A DNA stretch of 64,000 bases from the sequence record MW825358.1, one strand, 5' to 3'. Both the position numbers and the translations under genes were made by a program. How positions within the stretch are numbered: position 1 is the stretch's first letter; each line of letters starts with the position of its first letter. Under the pieces are notes generated by a model, which saw only the letters and a list, made by a program, of their open reading frames with translations, made no database searches and had not been told where the DNA came from. Of this stretch, positions 14,211-46,600 are shown one piece after another.

Positions 14211-15173
14211 ATGAATAACATCAACGATCAGCTGGTCGAATACCTCAGTCACCCTCTGAACATCGGTGTTGCCCGCGCACCCTTTTCGGACATGGTCTGT
14301 ACGGTACCTGGATCAGAACTTGACAAGCTATGGGATCATCCCACCGGTTACCCTGTCGGATTGCTCGAACTGAGCTATAACGAACTGACTGCGATCTTCT
14401 TTACGGGACAAGTCTTCGGCAACAATAATCGTTCTCTGTGTCATGTCTCTCAGGGCGAGAACGGTCGCGTGGAGGACCATGTCTCATGTGACGTTCGAAG
14501 CGACAAGCGTGAAGGGATGAAAGTGTCCTTTCGAGTAACGCGCCGGCTTGAACAAGGTTGGTGTAATTACGGGCTCAGTGCAAGACAGTTGGTTGTCGAG
14601 GAGGCTAACCGCACGAGCTTGAAAAACCGGATGACTTTCCGCCCCTTTATGGATAAAGAAGGCAAACCGCAGTGGCAGTTGATGCGTCGTGAGATTCTTC
14701 AGATCGAATCTTATCCACCGGCGGAAGATACCGTTCCGGCCTATCTCAACTATCTCTACAAGAATCTCGAGCGCACCATCGGGGATGCCTTGAAGGTGAA
14801 TGAGGATGGGTACTTGGTCGAGACCGGTGTTGATGGTGAGATCCAGTGCTGGTGGGAAGACGTAGTGGCCGAGATGATCGAGACGGGTCTGCAACACCAC
14901 CCGTTGGGCGTGTACAACTACATTCCTACTGATCCGAGCTTGATTGACTGGTTCTTCGAGGTTAAGGCTCAAGCCGCCAATGGTGCGTTTGATCACACCA
15001 CCAGCAGCATTGAAACGGTGTCCAAGCGCATTGCCGATGTCGGTACACGGTTTGCTGAACTGACTGAACCTTTCGTTCAGAAAGCGGCACGCGAAAATCG
15101 AGCACTAGCACGTGAGATCAAGCAGCAGGACGAGCATGGTTCTCCGTTGGACGAAGAAGATCTGGTAGACTAA
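14211..15173 (+). CDS. Hypothetical protein
   Basis: 320-aa ORF with GAGGAG RBS. Confidence 0.8.
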   Translation: MNNINDQLVEYLSHPLNIGVARAPFSDMVCTVPGSELDKLWDHPTGYPVGLLELSYNELTAIFFTGQVFGNNNRSLCHVSQGENGRVEDHVSCDVRSDKREGMKVSFRVTRRLEQGWCNYGLSARQLVVEEANRTSLKNRMTFRPFMDKEGKPQWQLMRREILQIESYPPAEDTVPAYLNYLYKNLERTIGDALKVNEDGYLVETGVDGEIQCWWEDVVAEMIETGLQHHPLGVYNYIPTDPSLIDWFFEVKAQAANGAFDHTTSSIETVSKRIADVGTRFAELTEPFVQKAARENRALAREIKQQDEHGSPLDEEDLVD

Positions 15174-15184
15174 GTTGTAAAGAC

Positions 15185-15216
15185 TACAGCCCCGCCTTTG
15201 TGGGCGGGGCTGTATG
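15185..15216. terminator. GC-rich hairpin + TATG
   Basis: TACAGCCCCGCC-TTTGTG-GGCGGGGCTGTA-TG. Confidence 0.7.
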
Positions 15217-15362
15217 TTGCTGTCCAATCTCGACACCATCCCCAGTGAACGCCAGTGCTAGGCTAGACTTAAAACACCAGTAAGCCGCCCTAAGTGTTGA
15301 ACTGTAGTTTCTTTTTACCTAACGTGCTGACTGTGTGTAGGAGGCAGTCGGCTTCACCTACA

Positions 15363-15406
15363 GTTGGAGATAGACTCCAGCTTCACTTACCACGATAGGA
15401 ACTATC
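15363..15406 (+). promoter_or_regulatory. Twin-hairpin translational leader (ATAGA loop + GGAA loop)
   Basis: TGGAG-ATAGA-CTCCA then GATAG-GAA-CTATC abutting ATG. Confidence 0.55.
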
Positions 15407-16498
15407 ATGGACACGCAACACGATTACCTTGTTTTCATTGGTCGCTTTGAACCCTTCCACAACGGACACATGGCAGTGGCGCGTCGGGCTTTGCAGCTCG
15501 GCAAGAAACTGATCGTTTTGATTGGCTCGGCCCACAAGCCGCGCTCCATCAAGAACCCTTGGATCGCTGAGGAACGGTCAGTGATGATCCGCACCGCTCT
15601 GGCTGAGCACCAAGATCGCTTGATCATCGGTCAGCTGCGCGATCACCTGTACAACGAAGACCAGTGGATCGCTGATGTGCAACGGGCCGTGCGTGAGGCT
15701 GTGGTCGACTTTGACGGCCGCATGAGCTTTGACAAACAGTCCATTCGCATGATCGGTCAGAACAAGGATGAGTCAAGCTACTACCTGCAGATGTTTCCGC
15801 AGTGGCCTGCCATTGACGTCAGTCACACGGCAGTGCAATCGGCCACCGATCTGCGCAACTACTTGTTCGATGCTGGACGGGTGGAAACGCACGGGGGTAT
15901 GAACATGATCCGCGCCAACGTACCGCGGCCTGTGTTTGAAATGATCGATGCCTTCCGCCACAGCTCGCCAGACTTTAATCAGCTCGTGCGTGAGCACAAG
16001 TTCATCAAGGACTATAAGTCAGGCTGGGACACCGCGCCGTACGCGCCGACCTTTACCACCACCGATGCGGTTGTGACCTACTCTGGTCATGTCTTGTTGG
16101 TGCGACGTAGGGCCGAGCCGGGGAAAGGACTGTGGGCACTTCCGGGTGGGTTTGTAAACCCCAAAGAAAGTATCTACGATTCGTGTATCCGCGAGTTGCG
16201 TGAGGAGACCCGACTGCGGATTCCCGCATCGATCCTCAAGGGTTCTCTCAAGGCCAAAGAAGTCTTCGATCATCCTGACCGCAGTCTGCGTGGACGCACC
16301 ATCACCCACGCGTTCCACTTCCACTTTGCCGCAGGTGAACTCCCGCCGGTCAAGGGAGGGGACGATGCTGATAAGGCCCGCTGGGTCCCGATCAGTGAAG
16401 TGCTGGAAATGGGGCCGCGTCTGTATGAGGATCATCTCGACATCATCGAGTTCTTCCTGGGCCAAACCGCCAGTCAGCGGCAGTCGTTGATCGACTAA
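15407..16498 (+). CDS. nadM: Bifunctional NMN adenylyltransferase / ADP-ribose pyrophosphatase (NadM-NUDIX)
   Basis: GRFEPFHNGH nucleotidyltransferase motif; GGFVNPKESIYDSCIRELREET Nudix box. Confidence 0.95.
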   Translation: MDTQHDYLVFIGRFEPFHNGHMAVARRALQLGKKLIVLIGSAHKPRSIKNPWIAEERSVMIRTALAEHQDRLIIGQLRDHLYNEDQWIADVQRAVREAVVDFDGRMSFDKQSIRMIGQNKDESSYYLQMFPQWPAIDVSHTAVQSATDLRNYLFDAGRVETHGGMNMIRANVPRPVFEMIDAFRHSSPDFNQLVREHKFIKDYKSGWDTAPYAPTFTTTDAVVTYSGHVLLVRRRAEPGKGLWALPGGFVNPKESIYDSCIRELREETRLRIPASILKGSLKAKEVFDHPDRSLRGRTITHAFHFHFAAGELPPVKGGDDADKARWVPISEVLEMGPRLYEDHLDIIEFFLGQTASQRQSLID

Positions 16499-16509
16499 CT
16501 GACCACACC

Positions 16510-16558
16510 CCGGCGGATAGACCGCCGGTTCTCAACCCGACTTGAAGGAACTTCAGTC
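16510..16558 (+). promoter_or_regulatory. Twin-hairpin translational leader (second copy)
   Basis: CCGGCGG-ATAGA-CCGCCGG then TGAAG-GAA-CTTCA upstream of ATG. Confidence 0.55.
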
Positions 16559-17959
16559 ATGCTGTACAACAATCTGATTCTCAACACCGATAGTTACAAA
16601 GCCAGTCACTGGACCCAGTATCCGGCCAACACCGAAACGACGTTCTTCTACGCCGAATCGCGTGGTGGGGTACATGACCAGACCGTGTTCTTCGGCCTGC
16701 AGACGATCTTGATGGATTATCTGAGCCGACCGATCACCCATGCTGATGTGGATGAAGCCCGTGACCTGTTTGCAGGTCATGGTGAACCGTTCAATGAAGC
16801 AGGCTGGCGGTACATCGTTGATACCCATGGTGGCTTTCTGCCTGTGCGCATCCGCGCTGTGGCTGAAGGGACGGTCGTGCCGACGCATAACGCGCTCTAC
16901 ACGGTCGAGTCCACCGATCCGGCTTGCTACTGGGTCCCTTCGTACCTGGAAACCTTGCTCATGCGCACCTGGTACACCACCACGGTGGCTACTGTGAGCT
17001 GGGCGTGCAAACAAGTGATCTCCAAGCACCTGTACAAGACCTGCGATGCCCCCGAAGAACAGCTGCCGTTTAAGCTGCACGACTTCGGCGCCCGTGGTGT
17101 GTCCAGCACAGAGTCCTCGGCCTTAGGTGGTCTGGCTCATCTGGTCAACTTCCAAGGCACTGACACCGTGCTGGCCTTGGTGGCTGCCCGTCGCTATTAC
17201 CACTGTGAGATGGCAGGCTATTCGGTTCCGGCCGCAGAGCACGCCACGATCACCCCGTGGGGTCGCGCCGGTGAGGTTGAGGCCTACCGGAACATGCTGA
17301 AGCAATTTGGCCGTGAAGGTGGGATCGTCTCGGTGGTGTCAGACAGCTATGATATCTTCAACGCCGTCTCTAAGATCTGGGGCAATGCCCTGCGTCAAGA
17401 GGTGATCGACTCAGGGGCCACCTTGGTCATTCGTCCGGATTCGGGCGAGCCGGTGGAGATCGTGCTGGAATGTCTGGAGCGGATCGATGCGGCTTTTGGC
17501 CACACCATCAACGCCAAGGGCTTTAAGGTCTTGAACCAAGTCCGTGTCCTGCAAGGTGATGGGATTGATCCGGCCATGCTGGAAAAGATCCTGGAGGCTT
17601 CCACGGCACAAGGCTACTCAGCTGAGAACCTGGTGTTTGGGATGGGCGGCGGGTTGCTGCAAAAGGTCAACCGTGATACGCAAAAGTTCGCACTCAAGTG
17701 TTCGGCGGCGTTGGTGAACGGACAGTGGATCGATGTCTACAAGGACCCGATCACCGACAGTGGGAAGCGCTCCAAGCGCGGACGCCTGTCGCTGTTCCGT
17801 CATCGCGAATACGGCACTTATCGGACCTTGCGTTTGGACGAGCCGACCCCGGCTGGCTTTGACGATGTCATGGTCACGGTGTGGGAGAACGGTAAGCAAT
17901 TGGTGCATCAGACGTTGGCCGATATCCGGCTGCGTGCCGATGCGCTGCGTAGGAAGTAA
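16559..17959 (+). CDS. nadV: Nicotinamide phosphoribosyltransferase (NAMPT)
   Basis: TDSYKASH, LHDFGARG, PAAEH, SVVSDSYD, IRPDSG, QGDG, FGMGGGLLQ. Confidence 0.95.
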   Translation: MLYNNLILNTDSYKASHWTQYPANTETTFFYAESRGGVHDQTVFFGLQTILMDYLSRPITHADVDEARDLFAGHGEPFNEAGWRYIVDTHGGFLPVRIRAVAEGTVVPTHNALYTVESTDPACYWVPSYLETLLMRTWYTTTVATVSWACKQVISKHLYKTCDAPEEQLPFKLHDFGARGVSSTESSALGGLAHLVNFQGTDTVLALVAARRYYHCEMAGYSVPAAEHATITPWGRAGEVEAYRNMLKQFGREGGIVSVVSDSYDIFNAVSKIWGNALRQEVIDSGATLVIRPDSGEPVEIVLECLERIDAAFGHTINAKGFKVLNQVRVLQGDGIDPAMLEKILEASTAQGYSAENLVFGMGGGLLQKVNRDTQKFALKCSAALVNGQWIDVYKDPITDSGKRSKRGRLSLFRHREYGTYRTLRLDEPTPAGFDDVMVTVWENGKQLVHQTLADIRLRADALRRK

Positions 17960-18224
17960 TACCACTTGTGAACCATCCGAATGATCAGCCCCTGATCTGA
18001 TCGGTAGATGTGTTTCGCAACACCCGGAAAACTGTAGGTGGATCACCGGGCCGTGGCAGTAAGAGACCGGCATCAATCCCGGCTCCCAGATATAACGAGT
18101 GGTTGGTTGTTAGACAGGATTCATGGGTAACTGGTTGCCGCCCCCTGCCGATGCCAACGGAACCTTCATCATTTTGTTTATCTTCCATCCGGCCGCAGTT
18201 AGGGCCTCCAAAGAAGTGATCCAC

Positions 18225-18704
18225 ATGAGCATCTTAGCAGGATTGAAGCGTTACGAACTTGCACCCGCCGAATGGCCCAAGGTCCGCCCCAGAATTCCAG
18301 CTGTACAATTGGAAGAAGGTAGTGAGGTACTGTATCTCCCGGGCGCTGCCGTATTTGTCCTAGCTGCATTCGATTCTGCTTTCAGCACAGGGAAAATTGT
18401 CGAGCAATTGAGACTTTACTGGCCTATCCCCGTGGATGTGAAGGTCAAAGAAGATGAACTACTGCGGTTCTTTGAGAACCAAGTGGAGCTGTTCAATGCG
18501 CAATTGACTCATTTGCCAGAACTGAGGGTCTGTGGTTTCGACCAGACTCGTCGTCAGTCAGACCCAGACGGCGGCTACCGCTATGTCACCAGGCGTTACT
18601 CGTGCCCACTCACGCCCTTTGAAAAGGTGTTCCGAAATGACCATGAGGGCCTCGGCGGTCCTTACGGCATGTTCATGAAACCAGTAAAACCAAATTCAAA
18701 CTGA
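18225..18704 (+). CDS. Hypothetical protein
   Basis: 159-codon ORF. Confidence 0.65.
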   Translation: MSILAGLKRYELAPAEWPKVRPRIPAVQLEEGSEVLYLPGAAVFVLAAFDSAFSTGKIVEQLRLYWPIPVDVKVKEDELLRFFENQVELFNAQLTHLPELRVCGFDQTRRQSDPDGGYRYVTRRYSCPLTPFEKVFRNDHEGLGGPYGMFMKPVKPNSN

Positions 18705-45820: not shown

Positions 45821-46180
45821 ATGATCAAAGTCCTTTCCAAATCTCACTCTGTCAAGATGACACAAAACCACAAGGAAGCGCTGGAGGTCATGACCTATGT
45901 CGATGACAGCGACGCTATCCCACGTACGTTGAACCGTCTGCGTAACAAGGAACTTTACTACGCCGATGGTCGGGCGTACGAGAAGCTCCTTGGGATGCCA
46001 GTCTACCTGCGCAAGGTCAAACCTTTCAATCGCGTGTTTGTCCAAGCTCCTAACGGAACTTGGGTGGACGTAACGGAAGCGACCTACCAGGAACTGCATA
46101 ACGTAGCAGTTGGAGAACTAGGCGTTCCTGTGATCGGCGAAAGTTGGTGGGGACGTGTGGTTCGTGCTTTACATTTCTAA
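45821..46180 (+). CDS. Hypothetical protein
   Basis: 119-aa ORF. Confidence 0.65.
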   Translation: MIKVLSKSHSVKMTQNHKEALEVMTYVDDSDAIPRTLNRLRNKELYYADGRAYEKLLGMPVYLRKVKPFNRVFVQAPNGTWVDVTEATYQELHNVAVGELGVPVIGESWWGRVVRALHF

Positions 46181-46195
46181 ACAAAGGAGCTTTAA

Positions 46196-46600
46196 ATGAA
46201 CCGCATCACTATCGACAAGATCCTTAGCGAGATCGATAAGGGTGGAGACTACAGCGCTGTAGATACGGCTGTACTCGAACAGGAACTGCGTAAGCTCATG
46301 AACTTCATGAAAGTACGGGATCGCTATATCGTCCTTAAGTACTTCGGTCCGGCTGATGATCGTCTTACGTTGAAACGGCTTGGCGCTATCTTTGGCTTGT
46401 CCGTTACCAGCATTGCAACGTTTCGAAATCGAAGCTTACGCCGTATGAGCCATCCTGCTCGAAGTGAGGCGCTTTTCAGCCTGGCTGCTCGGGTGGAGAA
46501 AGTCGATGTACCTGAACTTGAATTTACCCGACCAGAAAAACCTATGTTCCTGCTCACTCGGAGGGCCCTTGCTCGTGCCGAAAGACTCAAACAAAACTGA
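46196..46600 (+). CDS. Stand-alone sigma70 region-4-like protein
   Basis: RDRYIVLKYFG...TLKRLGAIFG...RSLRRMSHPARSEAL parallels RpoD region 4; AAGGAG RBS. Confidence 0.8.
   Translation: MNRITIDKILSEIDKGGDYSAVDTAVLEQELRKLMNFMKVRDRYIVLKYFGPADDRLTLKRLGAIFGLSVTSIATFRNRSLRRMSHPARSEALFSLAARVEKVDVPELEFTRPEKPMFLLTRRALARAERLKQN

Follow-up and report, generated by a model that had tools for sequence, protein, structure and literature searches.

How does a phage set the amount of the enzymes with which it rebuilds NAD+? The Xanthomonas jumbo phage vB_XciM_LucasX (LucasX; MW825358.1, 305,651 bp; host X. citri 306) encodes nadM and nadV, the gene pair called NARP2 in the phage literature (bioRxiv 10.1101/2024.02.11.579819). 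NAD+ depletion is a major antiphage strategy and NARP2 is a phage countermeasure, metabolically costly if unchecked: the pathway, composed of nicotinamide phosphoribosyltransferase (Nampt) and nicotinamide mononucleotide (NMN) adenylyltransferase (NMNAT), overproduces NAD+ and consumes phosphoribosyl pyrophosphate (PRPP), so that its unregulated expression is costly (bioRxiv 10.1101/2024.02.11.579819). We analysed a stretch of 64,000 nucleotides of the LucasX genome, matched at 100% identity (hereafter the window; window position = MW825358.1 record position - 124,000), in which both genes are preceded by a leader of two small hairpins. With moderate confidence, we propose that both leaders belong to a conserved cis-acting RNA element, present once at each cistron, through which translation initiation of nadM and nadV is controlled, and that the partner of the first hairpin is most likely NadM.

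Twin-hairpin leaders of nadM and nadV in LucasX

In each leader, a variable stem closed by a G-C pair and carrying the loop AUAGA (H1) is followed by a G-poor spacer, a second variable hairpin that holds the Shine-Dalgarno (SD) sequence (H2), and the AUG. The core of the nadM leader comprises TGGAG-ATAGA-CTCCA at 15365-15379 and GATAG-GAA-CTATC at 15394-15406, followed by the ATG at 15407, and that of the nadV leader comprises CCGGCGG-ATAGA-CCGCCGG at 16510-16528 and TGAAG-GAA-CTTCA at 16543-16555, followed by the ATG at 16559. The gap between the core stems of H1 and H2 is 14 nt in both leaders, and H1 of the nadV leader begins 11 nt past the nadM stop codon. An earlier, sequence-only reading of this DNA had noticed the identical ATAGA loop on differing stems before the two genes, the stem ending about 27-30 nt ahead of the ATG, together with a second stem that presents the SD sequence in its loop. 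The sequence bears out each of these observations, H1 ending 27 nt before the ATG of nadM and 30 nt before that of nadV, and both second stems are found in the minimum-energy fold. RNA folding revealed that H1 and H2 together make up the minimum-energy structure of both leaders (z = -4.2 and -2.9), in which the nadM H1 is lengthened to 8 bp and each H2 by 3 bp of unlike sequence, namely CCA/UGG in nadM, which takes in two bases (U and G) of the start codon, versus GAC/GUC in nadV.

The pentamer ATAGA occurs 61 times in the window, counting both strands, and only the two leader copies are flanked by a stem of at least 4 bp. A covariance model derived from homologous leaders matched the nadV leader with 40.2 bits and the nadM leader with 34 bits (E about 1e-6 and 3e-5, respectively, in the window), and searching the window and the whole 305,651-bp record yielded no comparable third match; the next one scored 19 bits and has no H1 hairpin. 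The match at window positions 46153-46198 and other matches in phage contigs (17-24 bits), likewise without an H1 hairpin, were rejected as false positives. H2-type hairpins alone are not unique, given that 16 of 72 SD-bearing starts of open reading frames (ORFs) in the window possess a stem of at least 4 bp around GGA. Hairpins of at least 5 bp with the SD sequence in the loop amount to 62% at NAD genes versus 18%, and are thus enriched, not specific; H2 alone was dropped as a marker of the element for this reason. The specific feature is H1, and H1 together with H2.

The leader in other phages and in bacteria

The closest relative of LucasX, the sister phage RTH11 (NadM 64% identical), carries the same leader before nadM and nadV. 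Its nadM leader reads (A)GGGG-ATAGA-CCCC(T) and then GATAG-GAA-TTATC-ATG, with a change from G-C to G-U in H2 relative to LucasX, and its nadV leader reads CCGG(A)AGG-GTAGA-CCTCCGG and then TGAAG-GAA-CTTCA. Comparison of the two phages indicates that the loops are kept and the stems are altered by compensatory changes. The H2 hairpin of the LucasX nadV leader is near-identical in RTH11 and has a homologous counterpart in Xanthomonadales bacteria.

IMG/VR was scanned with NadM and, separately, with an alignment of NadV; in the 87 loci obtained, a simple hairpin scan (G-[RTAGA]-C hairpin, spacer, hairpin with the SD sequence in its loop, ATG) found 55 distinct leaders from contigs of uncultured phages. 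Their stems are unrelated in sequence, with G+C contents from about 20% to 70%, and the first loop base is located 35-44 nt from the ATG. In an alignment of 50 sequences, 84.8% of the cells are paired, versus 52% in shuffles, and cells with a double change number 197 versus 67; slid registers of the same alignment leave only 25%-44% paired. H2, which took no part in the selection of the sequences, is 88% paired, and individual columns switch between AU, UA, GC and CG. For H1, a short stem was a selection criterion that partly fixes the inner pairs in advance; this does not hold for the outer pairs or for the later model-based matches. Moreover, the minimum-energy fold consists of the same two hairpins in almost all of the 98 unique matches that a second search collected from phages and bacteria. 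The sequence-only reading had suggested a covariance-model search of genomes and of Rfam; the motif was indeed found in homologous phage and bacterial nadM-nadV operons, and no Rfam family matched.

The H1 loop occurs as AUAGA, ACAGA and AAAGA, and in phages also as GUAGA, AGAGA and GGAGA, the last two with a C-G closing pair. The A-G-A at loop positions 3-5 never changes in 26 non-redundant leaders; 25 of them have A at position 1, and position 2 varies freely. In 24 of the leaders G-C closes the loop, and hardly any G occurs in the spacer. Canonical copies precede both nadM and nadV in Roseobacter phage DSS3P8, and Synechococcus phage BUCT-ZZ01 possesses the AAAGA-loop form of the leader. 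Several variants depart from this layout. One phage clade has the same GUAGA loop on both hairpins. In Ralstonia phage RSL1 (locus L211), the hairpin that abuts the ATG of nadM and of nadV itself has an AGAGA loop (TCC-AGAGA-GGA); with a terminator-like G+C hairpin upstream of it, this amounts to a rearranged form of the leader. Where NadM is distant (33%-36% identity; loci L027, L067, L075 and L083), phages display a variant of the first hairpin, G-[GUAGU or GCAGU]-C, some 60 nt upstream of the nadM start. Throughout the loop variants, positions 1 and 5 are A/A, G/A or G/U, which would be consistent with a Y-A-G triloop closed by a non-canonical pair.

The pattern of variation bears on whether the element acts as DNA. 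NrtR regulates nadM-nadV and prs-nadV in other bacteria (PMC2330246), and the G+C-rich H1 of the nadV leader lies behind the stop codon of nadM; the element could be an operator of NrtR or of another NAD regulator or, for the nadV copy, an intrinsic terminator or attenuator after nadM. We consider either version extremely improbable. The H1 arms vary by compensation and only the central 7 nt are conserved, as in an RNA hairpin and not in the operator of a dimeric protein, and every match is strand-specific. The terminator scan lists neither H1, and H1 is followed not by a U-run but by TTCTCAACCC (nadV leader) or GCTTCACTT (nadM leader).

When one genome per prokaryotic species was scanned for NadV, 80 loci were obtained, mostly from Xanthomonadales, with Burkholderia, Caulobacter and others, the NadV proteins of which are 60%-70% identical to phage NadV; LucasX NadV shares 68%-70% identity with that of Xanthomonadales. 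The covariance model R1, trained on phage leaders only, found 63 matches in these 80 bacterial loci outside its training set, all on the gene strand and situated either immediately ahead of nadV or in front of nadM, some 1.1 kb upstream. The motif-bearing genera include Xanthomonas, Stenotrophomonas, Lysobacter, Dyella, Burkholderia and Caulobacter. In Xanthomonadales, the nadV leader consists of a G+C stem around ATAGA or ACAGA, the spacer TTCACCC and the hairpin GACG(C)GAAG-GAG-CTTC-CGTC before the ATG. Because this arrangement is very close to the LucasX nadV leader, the phage nadM-nadV cassette and its leader probably came from a Xanthomonadales host lineage. The bacterial nadM leaders end in GTGAG-GGATT-CTCATG, with the start codon within the stem.

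At the genome scale, the model gave two matches each in LucasX and RTH11, and two, two and four in three other large phage contigs (257-327 kb), all at the NAD-salvage cluster. Whole bacterial genomes of 4.7-8.8 Mb gave one or two matches each, always at nadM-nadV; matches were present in 7 of 41 genomes of a family sample and in 2 of 151 of a class sample. In phages, nadM genes that lie kilobases to more than 20 kb away from nadV still bear their own copy of the leader. The element bears on the control of nadM and nadV both in phages and in those operons of Xanthomonadales, Burkholderia and Caulobacter that have no described NrtR site. It is short, sharply defined and present in culturable systems, namely X. 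citri/LucasX, Ruegeria pomeroyi/DSS3P8, Stenotrophomonas, L. enzymogenes and Burkholderia.

Proposed translational control and candidate partner of H1

The position of the leader and the presence of one copy per cistron lead us to view it as a putative translational operator: a structured, conserved element lies at the ribosome-binding site, with H2 enclosing the SD sequence and abutting or overlapping the AUG, and H1 35-44 nt upstream. A shared RNA operator acting on translation had also been proposed from the LucasX sequence alone, and this proposal is strengthened by about 100 leaders (98 unique), in which the loops, the spacing and the position of SD and AUG are kept and the stems compensate; all matches are on the coding strand, directly before start codons. 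Control of translation initiation rather than of transcription is suggested by the copies at individual cistrons, the intercistronic ones right after the nadM stop codon, by the SD- and AUG-holding H2, and by the fixed distance of H1. This distance from the AUG corresponds to the upstream edge of the region covered by the 30S subunit, and a conserved loop on a freely varying stem is the usual mark of a protein-binding site. In the putative mechanism, H2 would hide the SD sequence, often together with the start codon, within a hairpin abutting the AUG, and H1, a stable hairpin, would be recognized by a specific trans-acting partner through its loop A-N-A-G-A and closing G-C pair. Most likely, this partner would be NadM itself, giving autogenous feedback on both cistrons that could respond to enzyme-bound NAD+ or ADP-ribose. 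The element probably sets the amount of NAD-salvage enzymes made. The regulation of translation, its sign and the identity of the partner are all what we infer from comparative data.

The same geometry would also suit a constitutive module devoid of any sensor, in which H1, as a hairpin at the 5' end or between cistrons, protects the mRNA by blocking RNase E or an exonuclease, or docks the 30S subunit as a standby site or enhancer, H2 tunes the initiation rate, and the loop is kept for folding or ribosome contact. A sigma-70-type promoter in T4-like contigs puts the transcript start 2-4 nt before H1, the G-free and unstructured spacer resembles a standby site or a site for S1 binding, a geometry related to the ribosome would account for the fixed distance to the AUG, and a universal partner would agree with the wide host range. 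However, such a module leaves unexplained why the element is confined to one to four NAD-salvage genes per genome and why it is lost wherever nadM is absent, and the intercistronic copies are not at a 5' end. We judge this explanation to be quite unlikely.

Autogenous control by NadM is favoured because the motif before nadV co-occurs with nadM and because distant phage nadM genes keep their own copy. The motif precedes nadV in 55 of 57 bacterial loci with an adjacent nadM versus none of the 23 loci without nadM, although the NadV proteins of the latter belong to the same subfamily. On supported branches of a NadV tree, seven independent contrasts were found; the motif tracks nadM in six or seven of them and never does the opposite (sign test p about 0.02-0.03). 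In one nadV locus without nadM, from a metagenome-assembled genome of Proteobacteria (L138:2452-2491), an H1 remnant with a partly kept stem and an altered loop stands before an intact SD hairpin, which looks like erosion of the element after the loss of nadM. Only nadM and nadV always accompany the motif. A conserved third gene was considered as the regulator and rejected, since the neighbours differ between Xanthomonas and Burkholderia and the phrog_33851 gene seen in some phages is absent from LucasX and from the bacterial loci.

The sequence-only reading had named two candidate partners, the NadM-Nudix protein and CsrA/RsmA, and the comparative data favour the former. In a CsrA/RsmA site, a dimer would repress translation by contacting the GGA of the H2 loop as well as a second site within H1. 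The A-GGA of H2 does lie inside or beside a hairpin loop positioned over the SD sequence, and a GGA so placed is an established type of CsrA site; Xanthomonas (X. translucens) and Lysobacter (L. enzymogenes) also encode CsrA, as judged from matches to PF02599. The H1 loop, on the other hand, is A-N-A-G-A without GGA in all 26 non-redundant leaders; a CsrA/RsmA target would have two or more A(N)GGA sites, at least one of them in a hairpin loop over the SD sequence. In addition, the motif-bearing Burkholderia lata, Paraburkholderia phenazinium and Caulobacter zeae gave no PF02599 match in a search in which control genomes scored. A global regulator would leave the restriction to nadM and nadV unexplained, and H2-type SD hairpins are also found in leaders without H1. 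The suggestion of CsrA/RsmA as the partner is thus not upheld and appears very improbable to us; RsmA may bind the H2 GGA in Xanthomonas itself, although nothing found calls for it.

The main rival to NadM feedback is a very small riboswitch, in which a metabolite related to NAD (NAD+, NMN, ADP-ribose, nicotinamide or PRPP) is bound by the leader RNA and shifts the stability of the SD-sequestering H2. The element serves one pathway across diverse genomes (G+C 18% to 76%; alpha-, beta- and gammaproteobacteria and phages), as is typical of riboswitches. No neighbouring regulator gene is conserved, the GUAGA loop is found on both hairpins in one phage clade, non-enzyme genes are sometimes under the same leader, and the architecture is compatible with an SD-sequestering platform. 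Against these points, only about 6 nt and the SD sequence are conserved, with no conserved internal loop or junction to form a pocket, and the motif is missing from all 23 nadV loci without nadM, where a metabolite sensor would be equally useful. Neither the models of NAD+-I and NAD+-II nor other Rfam models match. Alternative pairing or a pseudoknot is not conserved either, complementarity between the H1 loop and an H2 arm being restricted to subsets of leaders: AUAGA finds its complement in the 3' H2 arm of the LucasX and RTH11 nadM leaders (CUAUC) and of leaders with the H2 arms AUAGA / UCUAU, and no such complementarity exists in the LucasX nadV leader or the Xanthomonadales leaders. A pseudoknot or kissing loop was rejected as a general feature, since loop position 2 varies without compensating change elsewhere. 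Taken together, a riboswitch seems unlikely to us. Direct ligand binding by the leader would make it one of the smallest classes of riboswitch and the third devoted to NAD metabolism.

As for NadM feedback, we tentatively propose that NadM moonlights as an RNA-binding translational regulator of its own gene and of nadV, recognizing the G-[ANAGA]-C hairpin and releasing or binding it according to the level of ADP-ribose or NAD+. Several points weigh against this proposal. We know of no RNA binding by NadM, and the public sequencing runs containing the LucasX stretch comprise one DNA run and no RNA run. The phages RSL1, DLP_6, Moby and phiM19 have NadM and NadV but no canonical H1, which is also absent from RsoM2USA and XacN1. 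The association of the motif with nadM could be partly mechanical, as deletion of nadM may remove the intercistronic H1 too, and all motif-bearing cassettes may share ancestry. Finally, unrelated small ORFs stand behind this leader in some phages (phrog_33851 of 117-125 aa, and ORFs of 81, 99 and 238 aa), which a purely autogenous loop does not predict.

Some of these ORFs deserve description in their own right. The large phage contig that gave four matches has its leaders before nadM, before nadV and before two small ORFs, one of 117 aa (phrog_33851) and one of 81 aa. Members of the phrog_33851 family share the conserved core GEDPNCD..G.HYQP.LG.FEG...FW.WGAGGD and stand behind the NAD-salvage leader in two phage lineages (L078:1544-1894, IMG/VR contig 3300024983_000001; and the minus strand of L218, in the ORF after 3417). 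Because the same leader precedes the gene in both lineages, this protein, which was not found in LucasX or in the bacterial loci, may be an unrecognised member of the NAD-salvage pathway. On the minus strand of an AT-rich phage contig (L219), three near-identical copies of the whole leader, at 3694-3647, 3340-3291 and 2558-2509, precede a 99-aa ORF, a 238-aa MORN-like repeat protein and nadM, respectively, which suggests that the leader can be copied as a cassette.

Should NadM be the partner, it would add to the enzymes that regulate translation and tie the sensing of NAD+ breakdown to NAD+ resynthesis; bacteria and NARP2 phages would then switch on NAD+ rebuilding only during NAD+ destruction. 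Whether the signal is read by NadM or by the RNA itself, one regulatory signal would be common to host and phage.

Surroundings of the leaders and comparison with known systems

The positions of the genes and leader elements are compiled in Table 1. The genes that flank nadM-nadV, LUCX_149 (14211-15173, 320 aa) and LUCX_152 (18123-18704, 193 aa), have no Pfam or PHROG match. Downstream of LUCX_149, a G+C-rich hairpin with a T-rich tail is likely an intrinsic terminator, so that nadM-nadV would begin a new transcript. About 20 nt 5' of H1 of the nadM leader lies a conserved block, the pattern of which (TTTTACC..CTGAC..TGTGTAGG) occurs once in the window, with 0 occurrences expected; this block may be the promoter or the 5' end of the nadM-nadV transcript in the LucasX group of jumbo phages.

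Table 1. Genes and RNA elements of the nadM-nadV region of LucasX, in window coordinates
Feature	Position	Strand	Description and basis
G+C-rich hairpin, T-rich tail	15187..15212	+	after upstream gene LUCX_149; sequence and terminator-like site in scan
Conserved block upstream of H1	15313..15341	+	alignment of three phages (LucasX, RTH11, IMG/VR relative)
H1, nadM leader	15362..15382	+	8-bp stem, pentaloop AUAGA (15370-15374), G-C closed; covariance-model match 15359-15409
Spacer, nadM leader	15383..15389	+	unpaired, G-free; RNA fold
H2, nadM leader	15390..15410	+	CCA-c-GAUAG / GAA / CUAUC-a-UGG; encloses SD (AGGAA), pairs U and G of start codon; RNA fold
nadM (LUCX_150)	15407..16498	+	bifunctional NMN adenylyltransferase / Nudix ADP-ribose pyrophosphatase; Pfam CTP_transf_like and NUDIX; record annotation
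H1, nadV leader	16510..16528	+	7-bp G+C stem, pentaloop AUAGA (16517-16521), G-C closed; covariance-model match 16506-16561
Spacer, nadV leader	16529..16538	+	unpaired, G-free; RNA fold
H2, nadV leader	16539..16558	+	GACU-u-GAAG / GAA / CUUC-AGUC; encloses SD (AAGGAA), ends at AUG; RNA fold
nadV (LUCX_151)	16559..17959	+	nicotinamide phosphoribosyltransferase (Nampt); Pfam NAMPT_N and NAPRTase

Searches against Rfam revealed no relevant family in the window region or in seven related loci, and the riboswitch models of NAD+-I and NAD+-II gave no match at E up to 10 in the window region or at E up to 1 in the seven loci. No description of the element was found in the searchable literature on riboswitches, RNA motifs or stem-loops of nadV/nadM and on a third NAD+ riboswitch class, or in the NARP papers, and the paper on the Xcc Nampt does not treat regulation. 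The leader thus appears to represent an undescribed cis-regulatory RNA family of NAD-salvage (NARP2) genes, common to Proteobacteria and phages.

Among known RNAs, the NAD+-I (nadA motif) and NAD+-II (pnuC motif) riboswitches are likewise cis-regulatory leaders of NAD genes, and NAD+-II also hides the SD sequence, but they belong to other genes, taxa and folds, with internal-bulge domains and a pseudoknot. The closest architectural precedent for a riboswitch is guanidine-II (mini-ykkC), in which a pair of small hairpins, conserved in the loops and variable in the stems, sits beside the SD sequence of the regulated gene. The two guanidine-II loops, however, are identical (ACGR) and pair together, whereas the leader described here has ANAGA and SD loops without complementarity and a spacer constrained in length.

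Among protein-bound hairpins, lambda boxB is short, closed by G-C and bound by the N protein through a purine-rich pentaloop. The R-N-R-N-A pentaloop of H1, also closed by G-C, may be regarded as similar, and its GUAGA variant fits GNR(N)A; however, the main form of the H1 loop starts with A instead of G, the element lies at the ribosome-binding site without a boxA or nut site, and no N-like protein is implicated. With CsrA/RsmA sites, the leader has in common the GGA of H2 in a loop overlapping the SD sequence, but not the GGA-less H1 or the occurrence in genomes without a CsrA match. T4-type PeSL (promoter-early stem-loop) cassettes are many near-identical copies of a promoter and stem-loop dispersed between unrelated early genes within a single genome. 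The present element does not follow this pattern: it has two to four copies per genome, all at NAD-salvage clusters and with non-identical stems, except for the one contig with three near-identical copies.

The translational operator of E. coli thrS, through which threonyl-tRNA synthetase (ThrRS) regulates its own synthesis, offers a further analogy. Its loops of 7 nt mimic the tRNA anticodon loop, and the bound dimeric ThrRS competes with the 30S subunit. By analogy, the nadM and nadV leaders would likewise place hairpins with a conserved loop and variable stems just upstream of the SD sequence of a metabolic-enzyme mRNA, at a fixed position by the ribosome-binding site. Unlike the thrS operator, the loop is a 5-nt A-N-A-G-A without likeness to tRNA, the element is repeated before two cistrons, and the binding protein is putative.

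In terms of the genes controlled, a counterpart is the NrtR regulon, which includes the same genes (nadM-nadV and prs-nadV) and relies on a Nudix-fold sensor of ADP-ribose, the type of signal proposed here for NadM (PMC2330246). The NrtR sites are 21-bp DNA palindromes with conserved arms and a GT-N7-AC core (PMC2330246). NrtR binds double-stranded DNA via a winged-helix domain, whereas the hairpin described here is RNA with variable arms, and a DNA-binding domain is lacking in NadM. If NadM does act on the leader, this would be an RNA-level analogue of NrtR, common to hosts and phages.

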